64,000 nucleotides of DNA, taken from sequence record OR836606.1. The stretch is one strand, 5' to 3'. Shown in pieces: positions 8,971 through 62,372 of this stretch (the stretch's first letter is position 1; each line of letters opens with the position of its first letter). The notes under the pieces are model-generated. The model saw only the letters and a program-made list of their open reading frames with translations. It was not told the DNA's origin and searched no databases. A program made the translations under genes and the position numbers.

Positions 8971-11900
8971 TTGAAATATCTTAATAGATTAAAAAATCTT
9001 AAATTCTATTCAATATCTGGATATAAAATTAAAGCTATTGATGAAGAAATCGAAGATAAGAAAAAAGATCAGTTAGTTATTTATAAAGGTTTTAAAGAAA
9101 ATTCATTTACTGATTTTTTAAATAGTGGATTATTATATCATCAGAATTTTAAGAATATCTATATTCCGAGATTGTATAGAACTAGAAATAGAAGAACTAG
9201 ATTATTAACAAATATAACAGATTATCAAAAAGAGATTAAATCTAAATCTTACAAACAGTATAGAGTTGAAAGAAATGAGAAATTATTTAAAGGTAGAAAC
9301 TATATTGTTGATTCAACTAAATTTATTGATTTAGAAGATAAATCATTAATAACTAGAAATTTTAATACAGTATTGGATTCAATTAAATCAACTTTTAATT
9401 CTTTAAATAATGCAGAAGATTACAATAATTTATTATATGTAATTAATGTTGATGGGTATAATAAGTCTTCTCAAGAAGCAATTAGACCTAATACAAAAGA
9501 TTTCATGTCAAGCTTATTCATGATGATTAAGAATCAAGAGGAATTACCTCATGGTGAAAATCAAAATATTAATTTATTATTTGTCTCATTAGATAATGGA
9601 ATAATGTTTAAATTTGATTATAAAGATTATAATAAACTTAATATGAGACTTAGACAAAGATTAAGAAGAATCATTGATACTAATACACAAGCATTAGATA
9701 CTGATGAAATTAGTAAAGTTGAAGATGATGACAATACTGAAGCTGTAGATGGAGTAATTAAAAAGAAAGCATTTGATAATGTAGGAACAATTGATCCTAT
9801 CGAAGCTCAGAACGATGAAGCTGAATATGAAAATGATGAACAGTTAGAAAAAATATCTAATAAAATAGATTCTACAATAAGTTATATTAGATCATTAGAC
9901 AATACTGAAATGGATGTTGATGATGAATATAATATAGCTATGATAATTGAAAAAGAATTAAATAATAATAAAGATTTAATTGATATTGATACTGAAACAT
10001 TATATTCGGATGTATTGGATAAAAATGATTCATTTAAATCAATTAAGAGAAATATTAAAAATAAATCTAGTATTGGCGATGAAGCACTTAAAAATACTAA
10101 AAAGATATTAGCTTTATCCAAGAAACAAGATGAATACCTTAATGATTTAGAGGATTTTAGCTTTTCTGAAGATAAATTAATCGATAGAGAAATTAATGAA
10201 AATATTAATAATATTAATGAAGAGACTATTAATAATATTGCTTCTAATGATTTTGATGTTTCTTATATGCAAAAAACATTTAATAAAGACTTTATTGATA
10301 TAATGAAAAGCTTTAATGACAATGAAGATATTCCGGTATTTATTAATAAAATGAATATTGAAGATAATTCAGATAGTCAATCATTAAAAAATACAGTTAA
10401 AGTTCAATTTAGAAGTCCAGACGGTTTAACTCATAATGTTAAATTTGATGTTCCTAAAGTTATTGACGGTAAGTACATGAAGCTTAACGGTGGGAAAAAG
10501 ATATTAACTAAACAGTTAATGATGTGGCCAATCGTTAAATATAAACCGGATTGTTCATAACAGTCCACTTTTATAGCAATATGAAAGTAAAAAGAATATT
10601 AATTGCTGAAACGGTTTTATTAAATTAATCAGCATCAATTATTATTAATTGTTCAACGACTAAATATATTCACTCTTATTGAGAGTATGATATAGTCTGT
10701 GCTCTAAATTGATAATTTAGAGATTGTATAAAATACAGATAAAAAATTCATATCAGAATTTCTCTTAACATATTTTTATAATATGATTAGGAGGTGAAAT
10801 TAAATGATAAACAAAAACGGAAAATTAGTTAAATCTTTCAAAACTAGAATATACCCAAATCAAGATCAAATAAATTATTTCAATAAATGTTTTGGTGTAA
10901 GAAGAAAAATATGGAATATGGCTTTAGAAGACTATCAAAATAAAGATGATGACGCTCAATTTAGCGGATTTGATTATCAGAAAAAATTAAATAATGAAAT
11001 TTATGAATCTGGTAAATATCCCTATCTTTATGAAGTTAATAGCATGGTTAGACAAGAAGCTTTAAAAGACTTAGATGAATCTTTTAAAATATATAGAAAT
11101 GAACAAAAGAAAGCTAGAAAGTCTAAAGATGCAATTGACACTGAAAAATTTAAACCCAAGTTTAAAAAGAAAAAACATTCTAATGAGTCATTTAGATTTA
11201 TGGTTAAAGATAAGAAATATTTACCTATTAGATTTTTATCTAAGAAATGGATAAAAATTTCCGTAATGAAAGGAATTAAACCTTTTATAATCAAATCTAA
11301 AGAATCAATGAAGTTTATTAATTCTAATAACCATAGATTTCTCACTTACACTATAAGCAGAAAGAATGAAAAATATTATATTTCTGTAACTTATGAGATA
11401 AACAATTATAAGAAACAGAGATTGAATAATGATTCAATTGGTATTGATATGGGTATGAAAACACCATTAGTATGTGTAGATTCAAATGGTCAAACATTTG
11501 AATTTAAAATCCCACATAACTTATGGAAACAAGAAAGAAAAACTGAGAAATTGCAAGCAAAACTATCAAGTAAGAAATATTATTCAAAATCATATTACAA
11601 AACTTTAAAACAATTAAGAAAATCTTATAATAGAGAGTGTAATATATTAGAAGATTATAGAGATAAAATCACTAATTGGTTAGTTAAAAACTATAAAGTG
11701 ATTAATATTGAACCATATAGTCATAAAGCTTCTAATAATTTAAGAAATGCTCGTAGATCTAATAGAAGATTTGGCAAATATGATTTCCTAGAAAAATTAA
11801 AGTATAAGATTTTACAATATGATAATGAATTGAATATAATTACTAAAAAGAAAACTACACAAACATGCTCATCATGCGGTTATGTAAGAACTAACGATGA

Positions 11901-14900
11901 GAAACTTGTCATTGGCGATGATATTCATGATTGTCCTAAATGTAATGTAGTTCTTGATAGAGATTTAAATGCGGCTAAAAATATTCTAGATTTAAAATAT
12001 GTTTAATTAATTTCACAAAATAAAAGATATGAGAGTCGCCTGCGGTCAGCGGGAGACGATAAACGGGTGATAAGCTAATGTCTGATTAGCTTTACAAGGA
12101 GTACAGAGGTACCTCTATACGTTAGTCACTGAGCCAAGTGTATTTTATACAAGATCTTGCCTTTAGATTTAATTATTTAAAATCAAGATTTAACAAGACA
12201 GACAGTATGGATTACAACTAACTATAATAAATTCATTATAGAAAAATTTGGTTATAAAGAAAATGCTGAAACTGAATGGATCAAGAAAGTTATTGAAGAT
12301 GACCAAGTTATAGATTATATTGAAAATAAATCTAACTTATCTGTTAAAAAAGGTAATGCTTCTTTAATCAATAATAAATATGTAACTTCAGTTATTTATA
12401 ATAGCTTATCTAGAAATATATTAAATTTCCAAGATGACACTAATGTACTTGAATTTAATCAAAGAAGTTTATTAGCGATGATTTCTGATAGTGCTAGTTT
12501 ATCTAAAATTGATTATGATCAAGATAAATATTTCCCTATTGGTTATAATATTAATAAATCTAAATTAATATTAGCAGATAAGACAGAATCTGTTATGTAT
12601 GAATGTAGTAAGACTAATATTAAGTCAATGGAAATGAATATATTTGATTACCTTATTGATAAATTAGACAATGAAGTTGACTTTGGTGTTATTGATAAGA
12701 AATTCAGTAAGAATATTCAGGCTAATAAGACTATGGCATTTTCACGTGTTAAAATTACTAATAAATTAGTACCTACAATTTTATTATTAGGTTTCTATAA
12801 AGGTTTAACTAGTATTCTTGATCTTTATGAAGTTGATTATAAATTTACTACTGAGAATGAAAGAATTAGTATTCATGATAAAAAGAATAAAATTAAATTC
12901 CAAGATGGTTATTTAATATACTCTACTGATAAATTAAGATATGATTTATTAATGTCTGGATTAACTGTATTGCCTACATCACAATACAATTTCAGTGATT
13001 TTGAAACTGAAACACCTTACTTAGAATATTTCAATGATAAATTCTACAGTCGTAATGTTGGTAAAGGTATCAAAAATACTATGGATTTAGCAATGGATCC
13101 TATTACTAAAGAAGTATTAAGGGATTTAAAACTTCCTGATAATATGGTTGAATTATTACTATTAGCTAATACGATGTTAGAAGATGTATCAGCTAGAGAT
13201 CATAATGATATGGGAATTTATCGTGTACGTGGCCCAGAACAAATTAATGCATTATTATATAAAATGATGGCAAATGCTTATAAAGAATATTCAGATTCTT
13301 ATAATAATAAAAATCCTAAGAATATTTCAGTTAAACAAGATCAATTAATTAAAACTATTATGGAACAACCTACAGTGGATGAAGTATCTGATTTAAACCC
13401 TAACTTAGAAATAGATAAGATGACTTCTGTTACATTTAAAGGACCTGCTGGACGTAACTCTGAACAATCATATGAACCTGATATTCGTTCTTACGATGAA
13501 AGTATGCAAGGTATATTAGGAATAAGTACACCTGACAGTAATAAGGTAAATTACTTGCCCTTAATTACAGTAATGTAATTCAATGAAAATTTATTAATTG
13601 CTAAAAATCTTTATTAAGATGATCAGCATCACTAAAAATAGTGTTCAACGACTAAATATAAATTCACTTATTATAAGTGTAAGATATAGTCTAATCTGTA
13701 TTAGATTATTATAGAATAATACAAATGAGGTATTGTCAGACAACTTTCATATGATACACAAATTAAATCTACTCGTGGTTATACTGATGGTAGTAAAAAA
13801 GATGTAAGTGATACAGCTTTATACACACCATTAGAATTATTAAATCCATATACTAGTAGACATGCGGATATACGAAATGAGGTAAGTTCGCAATAAAATT
13901 ATTTAATTGCTGGAAAGCTTTATTAAGTTAATCAGCATCAGTTAAAGACTGTTCAACGACTAAATAATAATTACCATTTATATGGTGAAGATATAGTCTA
14001 ATCTATATTAATTTAATATAGAATAATAAAAATGTCACCTCGTATAGGAATGACTGGTATTAAAATGAATGCCCTTTATTATAGTAATATAATATACGAA
14101 AAATATTTAATTGCTAAGAATCTTTAATTAAAGAAATTAGCATCAAATTAATACAATTTGTTCAACGACTAAATAATATTATACTTATTTAAGTATTTGA
14201 TATAGTCTGATCTGTATTAAATTAATACAGTTAACATAAATGACTCAAGCTAAGCATTTAATTGCTACTAAAACAAATGACCGTCCATTAGTTGGTTCCG
14301 GTGTAGATAAATCTTTAGCCTACCAAATTTCAGACACATTTGCTTTTAAAGCTAAAGAAGATGGAAAAGTAACTTCTATTAATGAGAAAACAGGATTAAT
14401 GATTGTTGAATATATTAATGGAGATAAAGATGTAATTGATATATCTGAAAAACTTGCTAAAAACTCTAATGGCGGATTTTATCAAAATAATAAACTTACA
14501 CCGCAATTTGAAGTAGGTAAGAAATTTAATAAAGGACAAATATTAGCTAAAAATGATAATTACTTTGCAGGTTCTGGTAGTAATAATGATATTCAATTCA
14601 CTGCTGGTAAATTATCTAAAGTTGCAGTAGCTAGCTCATATGGTATTATAAATGCCTTTCATTATAGTAATATAATGTATAAAAAATATTTAATTGCTGG
14701 AAAGTCTTTATTAAGACAATCAGCATCATTAATTTATAATGTTCAACGACTAAATAATATTATACTTAATTAATATGTATTTGATATAGTCTAATCTGTA
14801 TTGATTAACTCTTAATGCAGTTAATATAAATGACTTATGAGGACAGTTCTATTATTTCTAATAGTATGTCTGAAGCTATGTCAACTAAAGTTACTATGAA

Positions 14901-39626: not shown

Positions 39627-41642
39627 TAACCAATTTCCCCCTCTAATTCTTTAATGATATCATCAGAAGCTTCAATAAGAGAAGGTAAACCATGAAACTC
39701 TTGAGCAAAAGCAACACTGTCTTGACTATTAAATTTACTTACGAATTCAGTATTAAAATCATAATTATCTTTATCTTGCTCATATTTAGGTACCGTTATT
39801 CTATCTTTATCAAGAATATTCATCTTACCTACATGTCCTTCAGGTGTTATATTAAATGCTCTAATAATAGATGGATATAGAGAACTTAAGTCAAAGTCAC
39901 AAACATTACTAAATAATCTATTAGATCTAATATCTTTACCTTTAACCAATACGTCTCCATTACGTTCGATTAACATCATATCAGCTACAAATCCGCCACG
40001 AATTTTATCAGCATTAGGATCCGATAATAATTTTGAATGATTATTGCTTAATACATATCCTTGATTTTCAAAGAATACTGAACTACGATTTCTTAAACAA
40101 ATAGTTTTCTTAAGTGCTTTACTAGGTCTTGTTCTAGTCATGTCTACAATAGAGAATAATAGATCAAACATATTAGTGTTATGTTCAATCAATGCAGCTA
40201 ATACAGTATCCTTAATATTATAAAGAATAAATGTATAGTAATCTCTAAAATGTAAATCAGAGATAGAACCTTCATATACATCTTTAGTAACTCCTGCTTC
40301 TTTTTCTCCAATATCATTTAACTTAACTGATTCCAAAGCACCATTGGGCTTATTAATATTTGCATATAACGCTAATTGGTCAATCCAATTAGTATAAGAA
40401 TTAGTCTCAAATGTAGAAGATCTATTAGCCATATCAGTAGCATTTTTATCTAATTTATAATATGCTTTTTTATCTTCAAATTCTTTAGAACAGAAATAAT
40501 CTGCAGGATTTTCTCCATTAGCTCTAATACGTTCAAATATTGCAGGAAAGTCATAATCTAGCTTTTATATTTATTAAATATAAAATAGACTATATCATAC
40601 TCATTAATATGAGTGAATATATTTAGTCGTTGAACAACTCTTATTAAGTTGATGCTGATCATTCTAAAAAGAACGTTCCAGCAATTAATATTCTTTTAAT
40701 GGAACCTATTATCAATTCCATGCAGTACATATGTCAGGCTTACTAATTTCATTAATATAATATAAGAAAGATTTAATTACTTGCATTTCTGTATCTAATT
40801 CATATATCTCAAATTCTAAACCTAAATTTTTACCAATTTCACTATTTTCATTATTATAAATTTCATTTAAGTTTTTAATTAATTTATCTTGATCTTCCAT
40901 AGTTTCTTTATAAGTGTCAGTGTCATATTTAAGAGCAAATGTTAATACTTTTTTCTTACTCCAATCCACTACAGTTATAATATTTATCTCTGCCTCAGCT
41001 TTAAGCGGGTCCGGGACAATTTGTATTAAAAGTAATACAAATTAGACTATATCTTCTTAGTAATATATTTAGTCGTTGAACATTAAATTTTTAATGATGC
41101 TGATTATCTTAATAAAGAATTTCCAGCAATTAATATTATTTTATCTGAGCTACCTTTAACCCAGTTACTTGAGATCCATCAACCTCAATATCGAATAGAC
41201 ATATATCTATACCAACTTTACTGTCTAAATTCTTTTTAATATACTCATTGATATTATAATCTTCTATATTTATATCAGAACCATGAGCATTATTTAATAA
41301 ATGGAAATCTTTTAGTTTTCTATATTCTTGCCAATTACCTGACTTCATAATTCTATCGTATTCTGCTTTATCTTGAGAATTACCAGCTTCTTTAACTACT
41401 GATTTGATAATATCTTTATGCTTACAAATAACAGTTCTTACTTTATCTTTTTCAATAGAACCTACAATTTTATTAGGAGGTAACCAATGTTCATCTTTAG
41501 TTACATAATAATGCATCATAGGATCTGTTATTTCCATATGTTTTTTAGTACCATCCTCTTCTTTAACTACCATTACTACTTTTTCTTTACCAGAAGCAGT
41601 TTCTTTTTTATTTAAATATGTTGATTTAATGAATCTTCCCAT
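39626..41642 (-). CDS. Split family-B DNA polymerase, N-part (exonuclease plus motif A), spliced, 573 aa
   Basis: Exons 41642-41159, 41016-40715 and 40561-39626 are in frame. Junctions DIEVDGSQVTG-F|PDP and TAWN|LDYDFP; motif A DFDLSSLYPSII. Confidence 0.9.
40562..40714 (-). ncRNA. In8: mini group I intron, 153 nt
   Basis: P1 AUGGAAU/GUUCCAU; core motifs; terminal G. Confidence 0.92.
41017..41158 (-). ncRNA. In9: mini group I intron, 142 nt
   Basis: P1 CUGGGU/GCUCAG; no P2; core motifs; terminal G. Confidence 0.92.
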
Positions 41643-47300: not shown

Positions 47301-48110
47301 TTATTTAAATCCTTTTCTAACTTTAAACGCTTTCATTTCTTTTTCTGTTTTAATTTCTTTAAATAAATTATTTTCATCACTTTCTATTAAATCTAATATA
47401 TTAACTAAACCATAATTTTCATTATAAAAATCAATATAAAATTCTATATCATCTTTATACATATATTTAATTTCATAAAGAGACATTAATATACTAAGAT
47501 TATTCTGGTATAATATGATAAAGAATAAATCCTTAAAATCTTCTATAAATTTAATAATAGGATTTTTATCAAATGCTGATATTGGAAAACTTAAATCCAT
47601 AAATGGTTCATTGCCATATTTGATCTCATATAAATTCTTTTCAAACAATTCAATATTATTTACAAGAGCTCTCATTTTTTCATTTATTCCTTCATTAACC
47701 AAATTATTTTCATTTACTAAATCATTAGTAATTACATTGAAATATTCTTTATATAATGAATTATCAAAATGAAAATCTAATTTAAATTCTCCACTTTCAA
47801 TAGTTTCAATTTTATTCATTCTAGCAATATTAAAATTAATATGAAAATTAGTATTAAATTTTTTAAGAGTATCATTTTTATTATGTGTATTTCTAAAATA
47901 AATATCGCTATCAATTTCTTTATAATGAAAAATCATATAATCTTCTTCTTTAGAAATATTATCTATGAAAGATTTAGCATATCCTTTGCTACTTAAAAGA
48001 TTATTAATATCCATAGTAGTTAATACGTATGCAATATATTCATATCGGTTAAGATAATTTCTATCAATTTCAATTAATTCATCTCTCTCTTTATCTATAA
48101 AATATTTCAT
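47301..48110 (-). CDS. Paralog family member (start revised to ATG 48110)
   Basis: MKYFIDKERDELIEI...FKEIKTEKEMKAFKVRKGFK; AAAGGA RBS. Confidence 0.75.
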   Translation of the reverse strand: MKYFIDKERDELIEIDRNYLNRYEYIAYVLTTMDINNLLSSKGYAKSFIDNISKEEDYMIFHYKEIDSDIYFRNTHNKNDTLKKFNTNFHINFNIARMNKIETIESGEFKLDFHFDNSLYKEYFNVITNDLVNENNLVNEGINEKMRALVNNIELFEKNLYEIKYGNEPFMDLSFPISAFDKNPIIKFIEDFKDLFFIILYQNNLSILMSLYEIKYMYKDDIEFYIDFYNENYGLVNILDLIESDENNLFKEIKTEKEMKAFKVRKGFK

Positions 48111-48111
48111 A

Positions 48112-48888
48112 TTAGGAAAATCCTTTCTTAACTTTAAATTTTTTAATTTCTTTCTCATCAGTTATTTCTCTAAAATATGCATCAACATCAAAATCATTTA
48201 AACTAATATACTTATCATATTCTTTTTCAAAACTAAAATCTTTTTCTTTTTCCCTTTCTTTACCACTAAAATTCCAATCTGTTGCAATAAGAAATTCAAT
48301 ATCTGAATGATCTTGTATCTGATCTAGCAATTCAAAAATTAATTTATTTGTAGTAGTAAACATCTTGTGTAAATCTTCCTTGAGTTCTAAAGGTCTTTTT
48401 CCCTTTTGTATATGACTTTTAAAATATTTTAAAAAGCGAATCATAACTTCTTCATTAAAGTCATGCGGTAAATCTAGTTCACCATTATCATCAAATATAC
48501 CAGATCTTTTACTAAATAATCTCTTCCCTATTTCACTATTATTATATAAAGGAATAGCTTTAAACTTAATATAATTATCGTCTTCTTCATTTAGACTAAA
48601 GCGTATTATAGCGTATATAAGAAGTTCCATTTTATTTTTCTTACCTTTATATTTGTATTTAACTTTGGGGAAAGCATTAAAATTTATTCTAAGACCAACT
48701 AAACCATTGTCATCATGTTCTTCATGAGATATAAGAAAACTCTCATTATAATTTATTTGCATTGTAGTGAATAGCTCACTTAAAACTTTCCACTTAAAGT
48801 CAAAATAGAGTGTTTCATTTTCATTGAAAGTTAATTCTATAAATTCATCTTTCGATTTACTAATGTAGTATTTGTTAATTTTCTCCAT
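48112..48888 (-). CDS. Paralog family member
   Basis: YYISKSKDEFIEL...FREITDEKEIKKFKVKKGFS. Confidence 0.8.
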   Translation of the reverse strand: MEKINKYYISKSKDEFIELTFNENETLYFDFKWKVLSELFTTMQINYNESFLISHEEHDDNGLVGLRINFNAFPKVKYKYKGKKNKMELLIYAIIRFSLNEEDDNYIKFKAIPLYNNSEIGKRLFSKRSGIFDDNGELDLPHDFNEEVMIRFLKYFKSHIQKGKRPLELKEDLHKMFTTTNKLIFELLDQIQDHSDIEFLIATDWNFSGKEREKEKDFSFEKEYDKYISLNDFDVDAYFREITDEKEIKKFKVKKGFS

Positions 48889-48992
48889 TTACTTAACTCC
48901 TTTTATTATAATAATCCCAATACTAATTTAATAGTATTGGGATAACATTTTTATAATATATATTTATTCTAATTTTCAGAATTAGGCGATAC

Positions 48993-49370
48993 TTAACTAT
49001 TTTCCATTTCTTCACGTTGTCTTTTTAATCTATCAAGAACTTCTTTTTCTTCTACATTTTGATTTAATTCTGGTTCAATTAATAATTCTTTTTCTTTCAT
49101 ATCTTCTAATATATTTAATCCTTTTCCAAACTCTGGAGATTCATTAGGAGGATTAAATCTATTGTGTTTATTATCATAGAAATTTAATTTAACTAGATCT
49201 GAATTAGGTTCAATAACTACCTCAGCTTCTATGAATAAAATATCATAAGGGTCAGTGACACGTTTTCTATATAGCAAAGCTTTAGTATAAGAATCTTTTT
49301 TAAATCCATAATCTCTTAATTCTTGTTTAATATTTTCTTTACTTAAGTTTAATTTGTATTCTGATAACAT
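48993..49370 (-). CDS. Hypothetical protein
   Basis: 125-aa ORF with GGAG RBS. Confidence 0.7.
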   Translation of the reverse strand: MLSEYKLNLSKENIKQELRDYGFKKDSYTKALLYRKRVTDPYDILFIEAEVVIEPNSDLVKLNFYDNKHNRFNPPNESPEFGKGLNILEDMKEKELLIEPELNQNVEEKEVLDRLKRQREEMENS

Positions 49371-49504
49371 TACTTATTGCACTCCTTTTCATTGTATTCA
49401 TGAACTTCATTAAGATGTCTATGGTCATGATAAATAAACATGCAATCTTCTAATTTAGGTTCATATCTCTTTTTAGTTAATAATTCATATAATCTTTTTA
49501 ACAT
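49370..49504 (-). CDS. Small hypothetical protein, 44 aa (not in the ORF track)
   Basis: MLKRLYELLTKKRYEPKLEDC...; GGAGG RBS; fills the gap in the operon. Confidence 0.55.
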   Translation of the reverse strand: MLKRLYELLTKKRYEPKLEDCMFIYHDHRHLNEVHEYNEKECNK

Positions 49505-49519
49505 GATAAACCTCCTTCC

Positions 49520-49861
49520 TTAAAATGATACGTGTAGAAATATATAAAAATCATTCTTAACTCTATCAATTTTATATATTTCTGACATAAGAGCATGATA
49601 ATAAGATAAATCATAATAAAAGTTATCTTCTTTTAAGTCATCAATCATTAGATCTCTTAAAGTTTCATTATCTATAACAATAATATCATCATGCGGAACT
49701 TTTGATTTAAACTTTAATGTTTTATAAAGTTCTTTAGGTGTATTAAAATATAATTCAAATAAATGGTTATCTTCTTTTTTATATCGTTCTTGATCAAGAT
49801 ACCATTGTAAATCTCTTTGTTTACTTTTATTAATTCCGTATATACTTAAACTAAATTCCAT
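49520..49861 (-). CDS. Hypothetical protein
   Basis: 113-aa ORF with RBS. Confidence 0.7.
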   Translation of the reverse strand: MEFSLSIYGINKSKQRDLQWYLDQERYKKEDNHLFELYFNTPKELYKTLKFKSKVPHDDIIVIDNETLRDLMIDDLKEDNFYYDLSYYHALMSEIYKIDRVKNDFYIFLHVSF

Positions 49862-49915
49862 ATTCTCTCCTCCGATATAATATAGCTCCGTAATACATTA
49901 TAGAGATAAAATTAA

Positions 49916-50695
49916 TTAAAATTCAGCTTTTTGATATAAGTTTCCGAATTCATCTTTAACTATATCATCTCTGCCCTCAACTTCTTCAAATACTAAATCT
50001 CTGGTCATGGTAAATAATTCTGGGTATTCTTCTTGAAGTTCATCTTCTTCAATAATATTCATATCCATATCAGCAACTACTAATTCATATTCTTCAGGAG
50101 AATCCCCTAAAACAAAGAATTGTAGTGAACCTTTATAGACTTTTAATATAGAAGATAAATCTTGTTGATCTAATTCATTAATTTCTTGACTCAATTCTTC
50201 TTTTCGATCCAATTCTTTATTAATAGATTTTTCTTCTTCATCCAATTGTAATAATTTTGCGTCTAATTCTTCTCTAAAATCATTGTCTTCATCATTTACT
50301 TCTTCAGGTTCCATCATACTGTCTAGAATGTCTTTATTAGACATTGTATTAAGTTGATTAAGTACATTCTTAGCAAGCTCTTTATAATTATCTTCTGATT
50401 CATCATCAATAGACATTTTCTGAGCTTTCATAGTTAAGTCTATAATATCTTTCTTAACATTTTTCATTTGCATAATAGTATCTTTAATTTCTTTCTCTAC
50501 ACTAATAATGTTAGCTTCCATATTAGATACAAATGTATGTTTAGGATATTTCAGATTCTTAGTTAGATCCATTATACGATGTTCTAATTGAACTTCTTTC
50601 TTTTCCATTTTATCCTTAAATTTTACTAGCATTTTATATTCTTCCATCATATCATTAATTTGTGATATCAAATCAATTTCAACATTATCGGACAT
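49916..50695 (-). CDS. Acidic coiled-coil hypothetical protein
   Basis: 259-aa ORF. Confidence 0.7.
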   Translation of the reverse strand: MSDNVEIDLISQINDMMEEYKMLVKFKDKMEKKEVQLEHRIMDLTKNLKYPKHTFVSNMEANIISVEKEIKDTIMQMKNVKKDIIDLTMKAQKMSIDDESEDNYKELAKNVLNQLNTMSNKDILDSMMEPEEVNDEDNDFREELDAKLLQLDEEEKSINKELDRKEELSQEINELDQQDLSSILKVYKGSLQFFVLGDSPEEYELVVADMDMNIIEEDELQEEYPELFTMTRDLVFEEVEGRDDIVKDEFGNLYQKAEF

Positions 50696-50751
50696 TTATT
50701 TTTTCAACTCACTTCCATCATATTAATTAATATAAAAGAAAGTTAATTAAA

Positions 50752-51390
50752 TTATTTAAAATTTTCTTTAACCGCTAACTTTTTTATTTCTTTTTCATCT
50801 TCTACCTTTTCTAAAATCTCATAAAGTTCATTAAAAGTATATTCATTTAAAATTAAATCTTTTCTAAATTCTTGACTGGTTATGAAATCGACATTATCTT
50901 TTTTTGAATTAACTGTGTATACTAATAAACTTATATCTTTTTCGTTATTAAAAAGATTAACTATATTTGAAATTAATTCGTATTCTATATTATTTATATT
51001 TTCAATTTGAATATAAGTTACATATGAAAATACATTACCGCTAATTAAAGTTTTAAAAGGTCCTATATTTTTACATTCTTTATCAATATTACGTAATAAT
51101 GAAAATACAAAATATAATTCAAAACAACCATTACCTTTATCAGTTATATCTATATAAAAACCTCTAGTTCTATAATAGGTATTTTTGTCCTTTATCAAAA
51201 TACCATCATTTCTTAACGAAAATGAGCCATTTTCATCTATCTTATTTTTAATATTGTTAGAATTAAATAACTCTTTAAATAATTCAATATTTAATTCTTC
51301 TTTACTAGTATCTTTTTTAACGGAAACTATGTCACCTCTATCATCAATCTTATAAAAATCATGATTTTTGATATATTGATTTATACTCAT
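50752..51390 (-). CDS. Paralog family member
   Basis: C-terminal LEKVEDEKEIKKLAVKENFK. Confidence 0.8.
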   Translation of the reverse strand: MSINQYIKNHDFYKIDDRGDIVSVKKDTSKEELNIELFKELFNSNNIKNKIDENGSFSLRNDGILIKDKNTYYRTRGFYIDITDKGNGCFELYFVFSLLRNIDKECKNIGPFKTLISGNVFSYVTYIQIENINNIEYELISNIVNLFNNEKDISLLVYTVNSKKDNVDFITSQEFRKDLILNEYTFNELYEILEKVEDEKEIKKLAVKENFK

Positions 51391-51406
51391 TAAGTTATTC
51401 TCCTTT

Positions 51407-52015
51407 TTATTTAAAGTTTTCTTTAGTTAGATATTTTTTAATTTCTTTTTCGTCTTCTAACTCTCTAAAATATGCATGAGGTTCAAATATATCAATACCA
51501 TTTATAAAGATTTTAATATTTCCATTATTTTCTTCTTTAAGCATTTCATCTAGCAAATTAGATAATTTATCTAAATCATTTTCATGTTCATCATAACCTA
51601 TAATATTTTCTTTATGAAAATTTTTCATCATGATTATACTGACACCGAGTGAATTCTTATCAACTTCTAAAAGTTCTTTATCCGCATGTCTACTAATAAA
51701 AGCCCTTAATTGCAAAGTTACTTTATTATCTTTAATTTTTGCATATGAGAATTCTAAGAATTCTACTGGAAGATTCTTTCTAACTTCATTATACATATTG
51801 CTGAAATATATATTTTCACTATCAATTAATTCAAAGAGTAAACTTAGATTATAATAAAGGTCATCATTTAAACTATAGTAATCTAAATTTCTTTCTATTA
51901 ATTTTTTATAATAGAGTTTATTTATCTTATCTTTAATATCACTTTCATCTTTACTAATTATAAAAAGCTCATTAATATCTTTATTATAATAGAATTTATT
52001 TTCTTTTAAAATCAT
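51407..52015 (-). CDS. Paralog family member
   Basis: FYYNKDINELFII...FRELEDEKEIKKYLTKENFK. Confidence 0.8.
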   Translation of the reverse strand: MILKENKFYYNKDINELFIISKDESDIKDKINKLYYKKLIERNLDYYSLNDDLYYNLSLLFELIDSENIYFSNMYNEVRKNLPVEFLEFSYAKIKDNKVTLQLRAFISRHADKELLEVDKNSLGVSIIMMKNFHKENIIGYDEHENDLDKLSNLLDEMLKEENNGNIKIFINGIDIFEPHAYFRELEDEKEIKKYLTKENFK

Positions 52016-52165: not shown

Positions 52166-54712
52166 TTATTCTTTAGTTAAAGAGTATAAAGCTTGTACCA
52201 TATTATTTATGATAATTAGACTATATCTTCTTAGTAATATATTTAGTCGTTGAACAACTTATATTAAGTTGATGCTGATTAATCTAATAAGATACTTCCA
52301 GCAATTAATATTATTTATTGAGAGCATACAAGCATGTTACTCTCATTACCCAAATTACGTACTGAATTACCAGTGTAGTTTAGGTAGTTAGTTTTCTTAT
52401 TAAGAAGTTTATTAGCTTCTTTATTAGCCTCTACAGTCCAGAGAGATCTGATAGAAATCATATCCATTTACGTTATCTATATTAAGATAATATAGATCAG
52501 ACTATATCTTTACTTTAATAAGCATATTATATTTAGTCGTTGAACACTATTTGTAGTGATGCTGATTAAGATAATAATCTTTCCCAGCAATTAATAATAT
52601 TTAAATACGGCAATATAAATTACCGTCAAACGTTTATGTTATCTATAATAAATGATATCATAGACCAGACTATATCATCATCTCAATTGAGATATATTAT
52701 ATTTAGTCGTTGAACAACTTATATGAAGCTGATGCTGATTGCTCTAATAAGAGTTTTCAGCAATTAATAATATTTTCATTCTTAAATCACTTTAAGAAGC
52801 GACTTTTTCAAATCGGCACCTAACGCTATTTAATTTATAATTAAATTTGGACTATATCATAAACCTAAATATTAGGTTCCCTCACACTTCGGGAATTCAT
52901 TTCCCTACTCTACTCACTTCGTTATAGTATTTCAACTATACTTATTCTCTATATAAGAGTTACATTTATTGTTTTCGATAGTCTCTGAACGTTTATCCAT
53001 CATGTGGATACTTCGCTGCTAGACTTTCCCATTATTAAATACCCTTAGCATTTTCAGCATAGGTCATCAAAGAGATTTTTTCTGTCTTTCGACTGCATGT
53101 CACGCTATCCATTACTGGCATACGTTGTAGCTCTCTAAGCATTAGGGTTTACAAGCAATTCATAAGGTATTTTTTATCCTATATTACTATAAGACTGGAG
53201 CGTAAGTTACTCCGGCATAACTGTTGTGTATAATAGCGGTATCTATAAATACATCTTCATCAACAGGATATTCATGAACAACTTTAGGATAATCTTTAAG
53301 TACAATATCGTCTAAAGTAATTTCAGGAATTGTATCAACTGTAGTCAATATTTTAATTTTGGCAGGTGCAACATTCAAGAAATTTTCGCAAACTATATTA
53401 AATTAATACAGATCAGACTATATCATTACCTACTTTTAGGTATATTATATTTAGTCGTTGAACAAGTTTAATTGACTTGATGCTAATTAACCTATTAAAG
53501 TCTTTTAGCAATTAATAATATTTTCATTCTTAAATCACTTTAAGAAGCGACCAGTGTATTAATCGGATATCTTGAATAAACCACATGCTTATCTTCACAT
53601 ATTTCTGTAGCAGCTATATAAAGTAAATCAATTACAGTAAAAGTTCTACCTAAAGTATTTTCAAATAATTTAACTTTATGACGTTTACCTTGTCTATCAT
53701 TTACATATATAGGACTAAATCTTTCATTAGGATCCTTAATAAAGAATTCTAACATATTCTTAATAGCTTTATCATCAAACTGTTCATATACTTCTTCTAA
53801 TGATAATTCATTTTCATCAGTTCCAGTAGCGGTTTGGAAGGCATCTTTGTGGATTTCAATAAAATCGATAATGTATTTGCTAAAGAAAGGTAAGAATAAA
53901 GTAACTAATTGAGTTAATGGTACCCCTAACTGACCAAATTCAATTTGCATTTCATCCCATTTATTTGAATTAATCTTAGGTGAAGAAATAACTGAGCGAG
54001 TACTGTTATCTACCGTCTTACCTAAAATATTTCTTTGCATCATACCAGTTTTACCTGATAGTTCTCCTGAAGTTAATTTAACGTATATTTCAAATAATTT
54101 ATTTTGAATATTATATTTAGTCGTATTAGCTACAAAGTCAAATGAATTAAAACTAATTGAATCTACAGATCTTAAGATGCTTGCATACATATCATTTATT
54201 TCTTCAGTATCTTGAATTTCCCCTGAAGTTTCATTAGGATTAAAGTCACGATAGAAAGCAGGTATTACGAGCCATTTATCTGTGAATATTCTATCTTTAG
54301 GAGTATTTTTAAGCATATCAATTTTTTCATTTCGGATACGAGAATCATTTTTTCTAAATTTAAGATTTTCATAATTATCGTATAAGAAATTTAATCCAGT
54401 TTCACCATTTTCATCTGGAACTAATTGTCCTTTCTCAATTTTAAAGTAATCAGAACCTTGAATACATAGATCTATATTCTTATCTAATTCTCTCATAGCT
54501 TTATAAGCTACAGGATTCAAGTATTTGCCACCTAAATTAATCCAACCTATATTATTCTTTCTTTCATCAGTACCTATTAAACCAAATATTTCATATGAAA
54601 ATAAACCATCTTCTTTAGGTAAAGTTCCTGAATCAAAGAAAATAGGATTAGTAACTTCTTTAGCTCCATAAGCTGTAATAACTTGATCAACATTAACCAT
54701 ATCTATTTTCAT
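52166..54712 (-). CDS. rpoC: RNA polymerase beta-prime N-terminal (catalytic) subunit, probably virion RNAP, spliced from 6 exons, 503 aa
   Basis: Exons 54712-53562, 53388-53210, 52825-52812, 52630-52622, 52464-52339 and 52198-52166 total 1512 nt and are in frame. They yield RYPI|ENFLN, HNSYAG|ALGAD|FDG|DMISIR and NLGNES|VQALYSLTKE. GKTVDNSTRSVIS motif. Confidence 0.88.
52199..52338 (-). ncRNA. In10: mini group I intron, 140 nt (shortest in the window)
   Basis: P1 GAGAGU/GCUCUC; P10 CUUGUAU with 3' exon GUACAAG; core motifs. Confidence 0.92.
52465..52621 (-). ncRNA. In11: mini group I intron, 157 nt
   Basis: P1 ACGGU/GCCGU; junction GGT|GAT. Confidence 0.92.
52631..52811 (-). ncRNA. In12: mini group I intron, 181 nt
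   Basis: P1 CGAU/GUCG with GAAA loop; junction GAT|TTT. Confidence 0.9.
52826..53209 (-). ncRNA. In13: full-size ORF-less group I (IA-type) intron, 384 nt; 5' site probably after GGAG
   Basis: GAAUUGCUUG..UAGCAGC..UUCAGAGACUA..UGAUAUAGUCC with P7 extensions; IGS CUUACG-CUCC; 5' boundary uncertain by 1 nt. Confidence 0.8.
53389..53561 (-). ncRNA. In14: mini group I intron, 173 nt
   Basis: P1 CGAU/GUCG; junction CCG AT|C GAA; P4 GCUA/UAGC; sister of In12. Confidence 0.9.
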
Positions 54713-57050: not shown

Positions 57051-60000
57051 TTAGAATTTAATCATATTAGATACAAATGAACTATTTGAAGATTCCAATA
57101 CTCTAACACCAATAGATTCAATAATATCTTTACCTGGTTTAATATGATCTTCAATCATACTATCATAGTCAATAAAAGGTCTAAACTCTTCAGGAATTGT
57201 ATTACCTTCAACTGCAATTACATTTAAACCGTTTTTAACTAAACTTTCATTCTTAAATACTTCTCTAAATCTATCTAAAGTATCTTCATCAGTTATCTTA
57301 TTTTTAATATCTCCAAATGTACTAATATTCAATTTAACTGCTAATATCTTAGCAGGTAATGCTATTTCTTTTTCTGGGAACATTATATTCCATGCTAAAG
57401 CAGCTCTATATGCCATTTGAGAATAAGGGTCTTTATATACCTCAGCATTATTAGCTTTAAACGGTTTTAAGAATTCGATTTCTCCATTATCTAATGATTT
57501 CTTAATCATTTCTTCTATATCTTTAAATTTACGTATTATCTTAATACGATCTACACCGGTTTTATTTTCTAAAATATCTTTTTGTAATATTTCAGTAAAT
57601 AGTTCTCTAATACGTTTATTAGTATTAACTTTTCTAATAGCCATACCTTTAACATCTAAATCTGGAGGTTGAATTAAATTACCCTCTTGTTGAATTACTG
57701 ATGATGCATAAGTTTTCTTTTTATCAGTTGTTAATTGTTTATCAAGTAAAACATTTTTATTAGCTTTATTAAATTAATAAAGATTAGACTATATCTTATA
57801 CTTATATTAAGTACATTTATATTTAGTCGTTGAACTTAATTTCTTAAGCTGCTGATTTAATTAATGAACTATTCCAGCAATTAATAAATTTATCTTTCTG
57901 TATATCGCTATACAACGGAGCATTAACTTGATAATACTCATTTTTCATTGATATTAAACCTAAATGTTCTTCCTCTAATCCTACATCTTTACAGAATCTA
58001 TAGTAAGACAATTCTAATAATTTAGTTATTTGATAGTTAATAATAGATATATTACTTACACGTTGTTCTAATTTATCCTCTAAACCATTCTCTGCAATTG
58101 GAAAATCTTCAGGTTTTAAAGATTTAAATTTTTCGTATAACGGATCTAAGTGAACAAAGTTCATTTATGTTAGCTGTATCAAATATAATACAGATCAGAC
58201 TATATCTTCTTTAGAAATATATTTAGTCGTTGAACTTAATTTCTTAAGCTGCTGATTTGATTAATAAATCATTCCAGCAATTAATATTTTTTATTGACAG
58301 CAATTTTTTATCACAACTGTCAGTATCTATAGTTAATACGCTTCTACGTTTCTTGTAATTCATTCTATACATTCTATTATAATCTTGATAATTATATATA
58401 ACCCAATCTTTTAATATTTCAAATAATTCATCTAATAATGGAATCATATCTTCAGGAGGATCATTTGGATCTAAGAAATCTTCTCTGCCAGTCATTTTAC
58501 TAATTTTATTATCAAATATATCGGTATGATCAATTAACCCAAATAAATTATTTTTGAAATATACTTTATTTTTATCTTCTTGACTTAATTTACTAAATAC
58601 TTCTTCTAACTTAAGAAAATCTTCTTCACTATAATCTTCTTCAACATTAGAAACTAAACCTTCTAAAATTTCTTTATCAGTTGGAATTGATTTTATCTTA
58701 ATATCATGATCTTCATATTTTTCACTAATTATTCTTAATATATAATGATATATTTCATCAATCTTCATGAAAAAGATTTTACCGCCAATAAATCTTTCTA
58801 AAGCTATCGCTGAAGTAGTTACAATATCAACTGCTATATAAATTCGTGAATTTAATTTAATTAATTCGAATTTATTCGACTTCGTCATTACTTTTACTTA
58901 CTTTGCACTTTAAGTTTTTCGTTATAAACTACTTCAACATAAAGTGTCAACCAAAGCAGAGGTTAAAGCTCTTAAGTCATCACATTTGGACATTCAAGAG
59001 AATTTAAATCTAGTTAGCCTGCCCAACAAAACGCTTACCGTACATTTTGAGGTTGACAGCAGCGTTATAATCTCTATCCATTTTATTTCCACAATCACAC
59101 TTATACCATCTATCTGATAACTTCATCTTATTTTCTTTAGTTAAGACTTGACCACAATTAGAACATAATTGAGTTGATGGGAACCATCTATCTGCTACAA
59201 TAATAGTATTACCATTGCTTTCAGCTTTTTGTTTTAATAAAGTTCTGAATTGTCTCCAATTCATTGCAGAAATAGATTTAGACAAATTTCTATTTTTAAT
59301 CATATTTGAAACTTTAAGATCTTCAATTGTAATATACTGATAATTTTTAATTAAGTTAGTAGTTATTTTATGAAGATAATCTTTTTTAATGTTATTAATT
59401 CTCATCCATATTTTTTGTATTTTGGTTTTCAATACATTGTATTTGTTAGAACCATAAACTTTACGAGATAATCTTTTTTGATAGTACTTAATCTTATTGT
59501 ATAGTGGAATCAATTTATCATTTAATGAATGATATTTCTTAAATTTACCGAAATCATCATTAATGATAGCTAAATCTTTTACACCTAAATCAATACCAAC
59601 ATGGCTATTGTTATGAATTAAGCTCTTATTATTATCAACTTTCATTACTATTGAAGCGAAATATTTTCCAGCATATTTAGATATAGTAACTTCTTGAATG
59701 GAATTATAATTAAACGGGATAGATTCTTTCATTTTAATTAATGAATTAATTCCTTGAAGTTTTAATTTATTATTTTTATCGCCTTTAATTTGTAATGAAT
59801 AATTATTCTTCTTATAGAACCTTGTACTTAATTTAGAATGTTTTTTAGATTTAAATCTCGGATACTTACCGTAACCTTTCCACATCATATTAAAAGCTTT
59901 ACCTAAATCTTCAGTTGCTGTGTCCATAACTTGAGATATTTGATCTTTTTCCCAATCTTCTTTACATTTTTTAAGTTCATCACGAACTTTCCTATGTGTT

Positions 60001-61234
60001 GGTTTTGGAAGAGATGTATCAAGTTGATGAGCATTCCACATTTGTTTCCATTTATTAAGCCCTTTATTATAAATATATCTAGAATATCCAAATGCTTGAT
60101 TAAATACTTCTTTTTGTTCTTTATTTGGTTTCAATTCGATTTTAATAGATTTGTACATGTGATTTCACCTCCTTCAAATATATAATATATACTTAAAGTT
60201 AGTGATGAATTTTAATTAAATTAAACTCACGAATTCCTGATTTAGTGTTTCCACATCAGTTAAATAGCAAGACTATATCATATTCTATCAGAATGATAGA
60301 ACCCTCGCACTTCAGGAATATTATTTCCCTACTCTACTCACTTCACATAGTATTTCAACTATGCTTATTCAGGCGTTAATCCTGTGCTTTCGATAGTCGT
60401 TGAACGTTCATCCATCATGTGGATGCTTCGCTGCTAGATTTTCCATTAGTCCACCCTTAGCACTTAATTTACATTAAGCTTTTATTTCAGCCTAGGTAAT
60501 CTTAGAGTATTTTTTCTGATTTTCATCTGCTTTCACGCTATCCATTACTGGTATACGTTGTAGCTCTCTAAGCTTTAGGAGTTTACAAGCAATTCACGAG
60601 GTTTGCTCACTTCTTTCATGAATTAAACTAACTTTAATTCACTATGAAGTAAGGGAGTTTTGATTAACTATTTTAAAATAATTTAAGTGAGCAATTCGTG
60701 TTAAATCACTTAAATTATATTAAACTAAAATAGTTTCTTTTCTCCACTATAAGTAGTTGCTGGACCTGAATTAGCATCATAGAATGTACTATTTTTCTGT
60801 ATCATAGCACCGTAATAACTGTTAGCTAAGATCTTAATTGTTTTTTGTTCATTCATATATTTATCATGTAAAACATCATCTTTACCTTTATAAATAAACA
60901 TATTGTGCTTAGCTACTTTACGAGAATCTATAAAGTCTTTTAACATTTCCGCATTTAAATTTTTTCTTTGTGATTGAGGCTGATAAATAGAACCAGAACC
61001 AGTTACAATTAAATTATTATTAATAATTTGTCTTAAGGTTGTATCTACATTCATTTTTTGTCCTGATATTTCTATTAAAGCTGGATCTAAATGTTTTTTA
61101 ATATATTCTCTACAGGCATTAATTAGTTTCTCATCATCAATATCAGGTTTTCTTATTTTAATTAATTTAATTAAATTTTCTAAATAACCCGTTATAGCCC
61201 TTTTACGTTCATATTTATTATCTTGATTAGACAT
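57051..61234 (-). CDS. Split family-B DNA polymerase, C-part (motifs B and C), spliced from 4 exons, 644 aa
   Basis: Exons 61234-60742, 58830-58316, 58161-57936 and 57751-57051 total 1935 nt and are in frame. KILANSYYG, TYSG-V|DIVTT, IDTDS|NFVHL, MKNE-F|LLDK..KKTYA. Confidence 0.88.
57752..57935 (-). ncRNA. In15: mini group I intron, 184 nt
   Basis: P1 GAGU/GCUC; P2 UGUAUA-GCGA-UAUACA; core motifs. Confidence 0.9.
58162..58315 (-). ncRNA. In16: mini group I intron, 154 nt, directly after DTDS
   Basis: P1 UGACAGU/GCUGUCA; core motifs. Confidence 0.92.
58831..59050 (-). ncRNA. Putative omegaRNA scaffold of In17 TnpB
   Basis: Structured region overlapping the tnpB 3' end (CTCTT/AAGAG stem; AACTA pairing with TGAAG-TAGTT), continuing to the 3' splice site. 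Confidence 0.55.
59010..60158 (-). CDS. tnpB: TnpB RNA-guided endonuclease (intron-encoded)
   Basis: KIELKPNKEQ HTH; RuvC VGIDLG, ITIEDL, DRDYNAA; Zn finger CSNC..CDC; GGAGGTG RBS. Confidence 0.93.
   Translation of the reverse strand: MYKSIKIELKPNKEQKEVFNQAFGYSRYIYNKGLNKWKQMWNAHQLDTSLPKPTHRKVRDELKKCKEDWEKDQISQVMDTATEDLGKAFNMMWKGYGKYPRFKSKKHSKLSTRFYKKNNYSLQIKGDKNNKLKLQGINSLIKMKESIPFNYNSIQEVTISKYAGKYFASIVMKVDNNKSLIHNNSHVGIDLGVKDLAIINDDFGKFKKYHSLNDKLIPLYNKIKYYQKRLSRKVYGSNKYNVLKTKIQKIWMRINNIKKDYLHKITTNLIKNYQYITIEDLKVSNMIKNRNLSKSISAMNWRQFRTLLKQKAESNGNTIIVADRWFPSTQLCSNCGQVLTKENKMKLSDRWYKCDCGNKMDRDYNAAVNLKMYGKRFVGQAN
60182..60197 (-). promoter_or_regulatory. Early-type promoter-like motif inside In17, upstream of tnpB
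   Basis: Minus strand TAAGTATATATTATA versus the recurring TAAATATATATTATAA. Confidence 0.5.
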
Positions 61235-61712: not shown

Positions 61713-62372
61713 TTATTTAAAATTTTCATTTATTTTATATTTTTTAACTTCACTTTCAGAAAGTTCTTCAATTATACTATTCCTTCTGGTATTAAATACA
61801 ATTTCAATATCTTCTAAATAAAATATATTACTATCTTCTATCTTCCCATTTTTAAATAAAGATAGATTAAATGAATATATTTTCCATCCTAAAATAAATT
61901 TAATTTTGTTTAGAATAGAGCAAACTACATTTTCAAAATTATCTTTATCTGTATGGATTATAACATCGTTATCCGAATATTCTATATGAAATTCTTCATT
62001 TAAGTCTATTAAAGATATTTTAGTTGCATGTAAATCATAATATACACCTAAATCTAATTTCAATTCAATATCAGAACGATACTTAGTGAATAATATAGAA
62101 ATAAAATTATTATTATCAATATCACTTGAAAATACTAATGACACATCATTTTTATTTAAATTATTCGAAATAAAATCTTGGATTAAAATTTTAAAATATA
62201 AGAAAAAGCTGATTTTATCATTTAATTTAAACACATTATTTTTTCTTAAGTTTACATCTTTAGAAAAATTGAAGTTCAAATAATTAATTTTTAATCTATA
62301 ATAAAAAGAATCATCGTTGAATCTCAATAAATTTGTATAGTGATTTATTAATTCATCTCTAAATTTTTCCAT
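61713..62372 (-). CDS. Distant paralog family member
   Basis: C-terminal IEELSESEVKKYKINENFK. Confidence 0.7.
   Translation of the reverse strand: MEKFRDELINHYTNLLRFNDDSFYYRLKINYLNFNFSKDVNLRKNNVFKLNDKISFFLYFKILIQDFISNNLNKNDVSLVFSSDIDNNNFISILFTKYRSDIELKLDLGVYYDLHATKISLIDLNEEFHIEYSDNDVIIHTDKDNFENVVCSILNKIKFILGWKIYSFNLSLFKNGKIEDSNIFYLEDIEIVFNTRRNSIIEELSESEVKKYKINENFK

Follow-up and report, generated by a model that had tools for sequence, protein, structure and literature searches.

Predicted group I introns crowd the catalytic loop of the virion RNA polymerase gene of Staphylococcus phage LY01

Short exons between group I introns are already known, as are introns in the RNA polymerase (RNAP) genes of jumbo phages, including one in the catalytic motif of phage AR9. 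One account (PMC10136302) describes three group I introns in the gene orf142 of phage Twort, where the 23-nt exon that separates introns 2 and 3 may be included or skipped, and a pair of group I introns in the 23S rRNA gene of Coxiella burnetii with an exon of 34 nt between them; it also reports that in engineered tandem introns a short exon is skipped or included according to the similarity and order of the introns. In placozoan mitochondrial cox1, a micro-exon of a single nucleotide lies between two group IB introns and has RNA-seq support (PMC5436844). As reviewed in PMC12908238, introns target active sites, conserved catalytic sequences being favoured targets at which imprecise loss is lethal, and an intron endonuclease in an RNAP gene acts in phage competition: an RNAP-subunit gene of PhiPA3 holds a group I intron that bears a homing endonuclease and interferes with PhiKZ. 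Here we analyse a 64,000-nt stretch (hereafter the window) of record OR836606.1, the 258,897-bp record of Staphylococcus phage LY01, an AR9/PBS1-like S. aureus jumbo phage on which a literature search found nothing, and describe its gene for the N-terminal part of the virion RNAP β' subunit (β'-N), in which the catalytic loop is cut by three predicted group I introns spaced within 23 coding bases.

Like the LY01 gene, Twort orf142 is an S. aureus phage gene with several group I introns and with similar introns around a very short exon, and a literature search for phage micro-exons found nothing beyond it. The two cases differ in scale: the LY01 exons are 14 and 9 nt long, three introns fall in 23 coding bases of the RNAP catalytic loop, and the mini-introns, whose splicing is predicted, are much smaller than those of Twort (157-181 nt, in a family that extends down to 140 nt). 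To our knowledge, this lower family size may undercut every characterised self-splicing group I intron. Coxiella also has adjacent group I introns around a short exon, but there the gene encodes rRNA and the exon is longer. In placozoan cox1, a second group I intron inserted beside a first made the micro-exon, and that exon keeps an essential conserved residue, as in LY01, whereas cox1 is organellar and RNA-supported and LY01 presents a phage gene known from DNA, with two successive micro-exons. The annotation of the orthologous AR9 gene (YP_009283049) lists two group I introns, both bearing genes for homing endonucleases, and one of these introns splits the motif as DYD/GD (a slash marks a splice junction throughout); the AR9 motif thus holds one large endonuclease intron and no micro-exons, against three introns without an open reading frame (ORF) in LY01. 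PhiPA3 shares with LY01 the use of a jumbo-phage RNAP gene as a homing site, the PhiPA3 intron allele being protected and the intron-less competitor cut; the LY01 introns, unlike that of PhiPA3, have no endonuclease, so that any role would be one of passive immunity. LY01 is an extreme form of a known mobile-intron habit, with no control role demonstrated. What is new, as predicted from its DNA, is the packing of three introns into 23 coding bases at an RNAP active site, the two consecutive phage micro-exons of 14 and 9 nt, and a set of very small ORF-less introns (the smallest of 140 nt, with P2 or P8 missing from some) accompanied by a larger one, In13, with a non-wobble splice site.

The interrupted gene is an orthologue of the AR9 virion RNAP β'-N gene, in agreement with the initial annotation of this locus, which had called it a virion RNAP gene. 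AR9 YP_009283049 is itself annotated as a virion RNAP subunit, and alignment to it is the basis on which the orthologues of phages MarsHill and Machias are labelled 'viral RNA polymerase beta-prime subunit, N-terminal'. We compared LY01 with a set of S. aureus jumbo phages comprising S6, PALS_2, DC4, SA1, MarsHill, Madawaska, Machias, PB50 and AH12. The S6 orthologue is uninterrupted, 503 codons long, and reads ...IIHNSYAGALGADFDGDMISIR...; it matches Pfam PF00623 (RNA_pol_Rpb1_2) over residues 437-473 with 26.5 bits (cutoff 25.3), and it also matches β' chains in PDB, both those of the AR9 non-virion RNAP (nvRNAP; 7S00 and 7S01) and bacterial ones. Together with this domain match, the spliced LY01 product carries the D-x-D-x-D metal-binding motif of multisubunit RNAP β' in the form GADFDGD. 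A Pfam search with the separate LY01 gene pieces gave zero matches, and the GenBank entry lists these pieces, exon 1 included, as hypothetical proteins. An intact DFDGD-containing copy elsewhere, which would have made the locus dispensable, was not found: the β'-N region is single-copy in LY01, and a search for contiguous D[FY]DGD, [FY]DGD and AD[FY]DG in the six frames of the 64-kb window found none encoded.

Alignment of the minus strand to S6 DNA resolves the LY01 gene into six exons and five ORF-less group I introns (Table 1). The joined exons form a coding sequence of 1512 nt, which has the length of the S6 gene and shows 94% nucleotide identity with it. The two proteins differ by 11 substitutions, every one before residue 377, and no difference falls in the C-terminal 127 residues, the stretch that crosses all five junctions. 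Introns In13, In12 and In11 fall within 23 coding bases and cut the loop as ...AG/ALGAD/FDG/DMIS..., exactly at the coordinates and junctions initially annotated. In S6 the corresponding sequence is contiguous and reads ...GCCGGAG CACTTGGTGCAGAT TTTGACGGT GATATG...; the 14-nt exon of LY01 differs from it at four bases, each synonymous in the frame used, and the 9-nt exon is identical. This 9-nt sequence is joined to both flanks in S6 and SA1 and to the upstream exon only in MarsHill. The segment preceding DFDGD has a constant length in a gap-free alignment of six jumbo-phage homologues, from phages of Staphylococcus, Bacillus, Listeria, Klebsiella and Yersinia, with AR9 nvRNAP, so that a comparison with related phage β' subunits, which had been proposed as a check, fits the junctions. 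In terms of the protein encoded, the junctions are as given here, and the predicted spliced product across the loop reads ...NSYAGALGADFDGDMISIR, with VVHEYPVDEDVFIDTAIIHNSYAGALGADFDGDMISIR as the peptide spanning the three junctions. The introns stand side by side, separated by coding bases needed for the conserved protein, and do not form a twintron. None of the five contains an ORF of at least 50 aa (the longest, of 35 aa, lies in In13), and for this reason they are not classed as carrying homing endonucleases. That every splicing event in this gene is needed for an active polymerase had been suggested with three introns in mind; removal is indeed needed for an intact β'-N, and the number of introns is five.

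Table 1. Exons and introns of the LY01 β'-N gene, followed by other features mentioned in the text (positions in the window unless stated otherwise; RF00028 scores from the local scan)
Feature	Positions	Strand	Length (nt)	RF00028 (bits; E)	Description
β'-N gene	54712-52166	minus			virion RNAP β'-N orthologue
Exon 1	54712-53562	minus	1151		ends ...TATCCGAT; junction CCGAT/T from comparison with S6 and PB50/AH12
In14	53561-53389	minus	173	39.9; 2.7e-8	mini-intron, P2 present, U at -1, terminal G
Exon 2	53388-53210	minus	179		...IENFLNVAPAK...IIHNSYAG plus first base of an Ala codon; protein identical to S6
In13	53209-52826	minus	384	27.2; 1.7e-4	larger, of a different type; 5' splice site after G
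Micro-exon 3	52825-52812	minus	14		CGTTAGGTGCCGAT; final two Ala-codon bases plus L G A D
In12	52811-52631	minus	181	54.6; 1e-12	mini-intron, P2 present
Micro-exon 4	52630-52622	minus	9		TTTGACGGT = F D G
In11	52621-52465	minus	157	43.4; 2.5e-9	mini-intron without P2, site FDG/D
Exon 5	52464-52339	minus	126		DMISIRSLWTVEANKEA...GNES; from comparison with S6
In10	52338-52199	minus	140	30.9; 1.3e-5	mini-intron without P2 and P8
Exon 6	52198-52166	minus	33		VQALYSLTKE plus stop; from comparison with S6
Micro-exon in another virion RNAP β' gene	7456-7441	minus	16		ACTCAAGAAGGTGGGT; T-Q-E-G-G plus one base
Intron flanking the 16-nt exon	~7457-7620				mini group I intron
i7361	~7290-7440	minus			mini group I intron without P8 and P2; flanks the 16-nt exon
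i41081	~41000-41145	minus			mini-intron without P8 and P2
i58235	~58153-58296	minus			mini-intron without P8 and P2
Part of RNAP β-like gene	13580-14840	plus	~1.2 kb		four mini group I introns; gene identity by eye; ...GILGISTPDSNK...
Exon in candidate RNAP β-like gene	14035-14058		24		junctions as read from LY01 alone
TnpB gene	10587-12006	plus			OrfB_IS605, Cas12f1-like TNB, HTH_OrfB_IS605 (Pfam)
TnpB gene	59010-60640	minus			OrfB_IS605, Cas12f1-like TNB, HTH_OrfB_IS605 (Pfam)
Neighbouring ORFs	47301-52015 and 61713-62372	minus			200-285 aa each; shared C-terminal motif
Reverse transcriptase gene	73314-74813 of the LY01 record				retron-type; outside the window

The three loop elements, together with In14 and In10, are predicted to be group I introns on several lines of evidence. 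A local scan of 1.6 kb with Rfam RF00028 matches all five, In12 over the gathering score of 50 bits. The introns contain P, Q, R and S elements, with R as GTTCAGAGACTA and S as TGATATAGTCC in In13, and the classical R (GTTCAACGACTA) and S (GATATAGTC) elements recur in 17 intron cores of the window. In an alignment of 15 mini-intron copies of the window, of which In14 is a member and from which In13 was left out, a hand-drawn P3/P4/P5/P6/P7/P9 structure has 93.3% of its cells paired; changes on both sides occur in 14 of 32 pairs, five of them in the P3 pseudoknot helix, and P7 and most of P4 are invariant. The observed pairing was reached by none of 500 shuffles, and slid controls gave 29-48%. 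These mini-introns thus share a conserved core from P3 to P9, including the P3/P7 pseudoknot, with compensatory changes. The P3, P4 and P7 strands of In11, In12 and In14 are identical, and all five introns end in the terminal G (omega G) at the junctions derived from S6. Rfam matches, covariation in P3, P4, P5 and P9, and the guide sequences described below agree with the initial annotation in calling the loop elements group I introns. The P8 columns of the alignment are empty for In10 and for three other copies of the window (i7361, i41081 and i58235), which also have no P2; the cores of In10 and i7361 are near-identical, while their P1 and P9 differ.

Each of the five introns has a guide that can pair with both exon ends (P1 and P10). 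The In12 guide AAAGUCG complements CGAU/UUU (7 bp), the In14 guide UGGUCG complements CGAU/CG (6 bp), the In13 guide ACGCUCC perfectly complements GGAG/CGU (7 bp), the In11 guide UUAUAUUGCCGU complements ACGGU/GAUAUGA in a helix of 12 bp across the ligated junction, and the In10 guide forms one of 15 bp across its own. In shuffle tests the In11 helix was reached by 13 of 5000 sequences and that of In10 by 0 of 5000. The guide cores are distinct: GUCG in In14 and In12, CUCC in In13, GCCGU in In11 and GCUCUC in In10. Near the junctions, the exon changes relative to S6 are synonymous, and those examined, GCA>GCC (In12 P1), CAC>CGU (In13 P10) and TCG>AGT (In10 P1), strengthen the pairing. A U·G wobble at the 5' splice site, with U at -1, is found in In14, In12, In11 and In10; the In13 junction follows G53210, which is paired with C.

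Base complementarity confirms that the 9-nt exon, UUU-G-ACGGU, supplies both the P10 partner of In12 (bases 1-3) and the P1 strand of In11 (bases 5-9), as the initial annotation had noticed, so that eight of its nine bases are engaged by the guides of two different introns. The splicing order constraint that had been drawn from this sharing does not follow from it. Since the two segments do not overlap, base pairing blocks neither order of In12 and In11 splicing, and either intermediate should be able to proceed to the same product; by analogy with the tandem introns described above, order or co-transcriptional folding could still affect fidelity. Loss of the exon by skipping would stay in frame and delete FDG.

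The occupancy of the catalytic loop varies among relatives. No intron is present there in S6 and SA1. MarsHill has In11 only, in a copy 96.8% identical to that of LY01 and at the same site; Madawaska has, at the identical FDG/D position, a large intron that holds an endonuclease ORF; PB50 and Machias have a different mini-intron at FDG/D; and AH12 has two introns that enclose a micro-exon of 14-15 nt (ALG/ADFDG/D), the upstream junction being ambiguous between ALGAD with C at -1 and ALGSD with U at -1. The endonuclease-encoding intron of AR9 splits its motif one codon upstream of the LY01 FDG/D site. Madawaska, MarsHill and AR9 have homing endonuclease genes, among them Madawaska gp114 and AR9 gp145, in introns that occupy this site or one next to it, and variable introns concentrate at the catalytic-loop site. 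LY01 has sequence like In11 at 34 places, Machias at 29, AH12 at 27, PB50 at 19, Madawaska at 11 and MarsHill at 9, and no copy of this mini-intron family was found in S6, PALS_2, DC4 or SA1. The variable occupancy indicates that the loop introns are optional, and the uninterrupted genes of S6 and SA1 that they are dispensable for the polymerase. Beyond the S. aureus jumbo phages, a search of IMG/VR with the exon-1 protein found no further relatives, while the core pattern of the mini-introns (P4...P4'...R element) has exact matches in seven uncultivated IMG/VR viral contigs, by which the family extends outside this group.

In12 and In13 occur at their sites in LY01 only, which points to a recent origin of both. 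In12 and In14 share an identical 45-nt 5' module (guide, P2 and P3), CCGAU precedes both, and the Ala codon that completes the CGAU target of In12 is GCC in LY01 and GCA in S6; an In14-like intron thus probably gave rise to In12 by moving to another CCGAU site. A retron-type reverse transcriptase was considered as a driver of intron spread via reverse splicing and rejected: its gene is found in 10 of 10 S. aureus jumbo phages, intron-free ones included, and shows no correlation with the introns.

We therefore favour, with a probability of about 0.8, a reading in which the gene holds five ORF-less group I introns and the loop cluster arose from repeated invasion of a homing hot spot. Three selfish introns would have landed within the 23 coding bases of the catalytic Mg-binding loop. 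In the transcript each intron would fold into a group I core, its 5' guide would form P1 with the final 4-7 bases of the exon before it and P10 with the initial 2-8 bases of the exon after it, and the intron would remove itself through two transesterifications, presumably in a guanosine-dependent manner, to yield an mRNA colinear with the uninterrupted S6 gene. The 9-nt exon would be just long enough to act as 3' exon for In12 (UUU) and as 5' exon for In11 (ACGGU). A likely additional advantage is that homing endonucleases of co-infecting relatives would no longer cut the sequence once it is split.

Several points weigh against this reading. The junctions come from comparison of DNA and protein, and annotations of the MarsHill type are based on alignment. 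Four of the five introns score under the Rfam gathering score, and scans of the full 64-kb window, run at the gathering score and at E<=0.01, report no group I intron; that a local scan finds what the full-window scans do not indicates that filters rather than sequences are limiting, and these missed matches probably explain why the introns are unannotated. The guide pairings of In12, In13 and In14 are not individually significant against shuffles (9-30%), while the loop arrangement taken whole is far beyond chance. In In13, cleavage is needed after the G of a G-C pair, the U·G pair is formed by the first intron base, and cleavage after U53209 would add one base and shift the frame into a stop codon. 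With P8 lacking in In10 and three other copies in the window, unaided self-splicing cannot be taken for granted. Immunity to endonucleases, finally, is deduced only from the coincidence of sites.

The best of the alternatives, which we nevertheless regard as unlikely, is that the introns are kept as a defence that breaks up a conserved RNAP target of homing endonucleases or CRISPR. A homing intron splits the recognition site of its endonuclease, and intron-containing alleles are generally immune to the cognate enzyme. The endonuclease-encoding introns at the same or an adjacent site in Madawaska and AR9 make such protection plausible here, and in the PhiPA3/PhiKZ pair an RNAP-targeting intron endonuclease gives a competitive advantage (PMC12908238). 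One intron would be enough to break a site, however; alleles without introns are tolerated by the same phages, and the endonuclease specificity is assumed. Of the earlier suggestion that splitting hides the sequence from nucleases, the part concerning homing endonucleases can thus be retained, whereas CRISPR finds no support, since spacers can target any sequence and splitting 23 bases would protect negligibly.

A more speculative extension of the preferred reading, which we hold to be rather improbable, is that the three ribozymes form a natural tandem, with ultra-small introns and one member at a non-wobble G-C 5' splice site, which has to splice precisely around the 14- and 9-nt exons and in which inclusion or in-frame skipping of the FDG exon would be set by the order of co-transcriptional folding and splicing or by a helper protein. 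If true, control of exon inclusion would be a handle on virion RNAP activity for the phage or its competitors.

Other junctions for In13, with a canonical U at -1 and a terminal G, have little in their favour. Two can be drawn: P1 of AGUUAU with GUAACU, cleaved after TAT to give NSY/LGAD with a 12-nt exon, and P1 of GGAGU with GCUCC, cleaved after U53209 to give AGV/AD with a 7-nt exon, each having an in-frame 3' partner preceded by G. Both were rejected, as they delete two or three residues just before DFDGD from a segment of invariant length in five genera and AR9 nvRNAP. GGAG/CGU is kept as the In13 junction because the reading frame, identity with S6 (LY01 GCCGGAG is the same, and CG completes the Ala codon after the intron) and the constant spacing require it and the guide ACGCUCC complements it perfectly; with this junction the predicted intron has an anomalous 5' splice site. 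The nearest relative of In13, an unannotated region of Listeria phage LPJP1 with 70% identity over ~320 nt, shares no 5' end with it and so cannot settle the splice site. The mini-intron at FDG/D in PB50, Machias and AH12 follows GGC, with C at -1 opposite a guide A in a possible C·A wobble, and non-U splice sites therefore do occur in this clade. Hur and Waring reportedly described in 1995 natural examples of group I introns whose 5' splice site has a C-G pair.

Slightly less probable still is a regulatory checkpoint, proposed in the initial annotation, in which ordered splicing of In13, In12 and In11 gates active virion RNAP and the triple split is maintained for this purpose. An intact catalytic loop does demand the removal of all introns, similar tandem group I introns around short exons can skip and their order matters in engineered pairs (PMC10136302), the identical P3, P4 and P7 strands of In11, In12 and In14 make chimeric folding conceivable, and the 9-nt exon would skip in frame. 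Yet the loop is uninterrupted in S6 and SA1 and holds In11 only in MarsHill, the whole intron family is absent from four of the compared phages, In12 and In13 appear recent, and the disjoint P10 and P1 segments leave the product the same in either order. Similar micro-exons also occur in other genes: another virion RNAP β' gene of the window has one of 16 nt between two mini group I introns, where the uninterrupted S6 homologue reads ...GRALGTQEGGYQAKQL..., so that micro-exons do not appear peculiar to DFDGD.

Least probable of all is a broken gene or a one-base sequence error, with In13 cleaving at the U·G wobble one base downstream of the junction demanded by the frame and the mRNA consequently frameshifted, since LY01 was isolated and propagated, the essential gene region is single-copy and all other features of the gene are intact.

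Taken as repeated invasion, the locus illustrates the degree to which group I introns can fill an essential active site while the gene stays viable, and its tandem cassette offers a natural test system for minimal ribozyme and exon context and for the avoidance of exon skipping. Because the same few codons vary in intron occupancy from one S. aureus jumbo phage to another, these phages offer a tractable way to study competition through homing endonucleases during co-infection. For annotation, the catalytic subunit of the virion RNAP is invisible unless introns are taken into account, and standard pipelines miss them; the hypothetical-protein labels, the missed Rfam matches and the lack of a Pfam match explain why it was overlooked in LY01.

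Other observations concern the remainder of the window. A plus-strand gene that looks by eye RNAP β-like contains four mini group I introns in ~1.2 kb, and a candidate exon of 24 nt lies in it (Table 1). Two TnpB genes stand directly downstream of group I cores, their hosts by eye being RNAP β-like and DNA polymerase genes, an IStron-like arrangement inside phage genes. Finally, neighbouring ORFs on the minus strand share a C-terminal ...E/DEKEIKKF/Y/LxVK(K/E)(G/N)F(K/S), in which slashes mark alternative residues, and look like a paralogous family.

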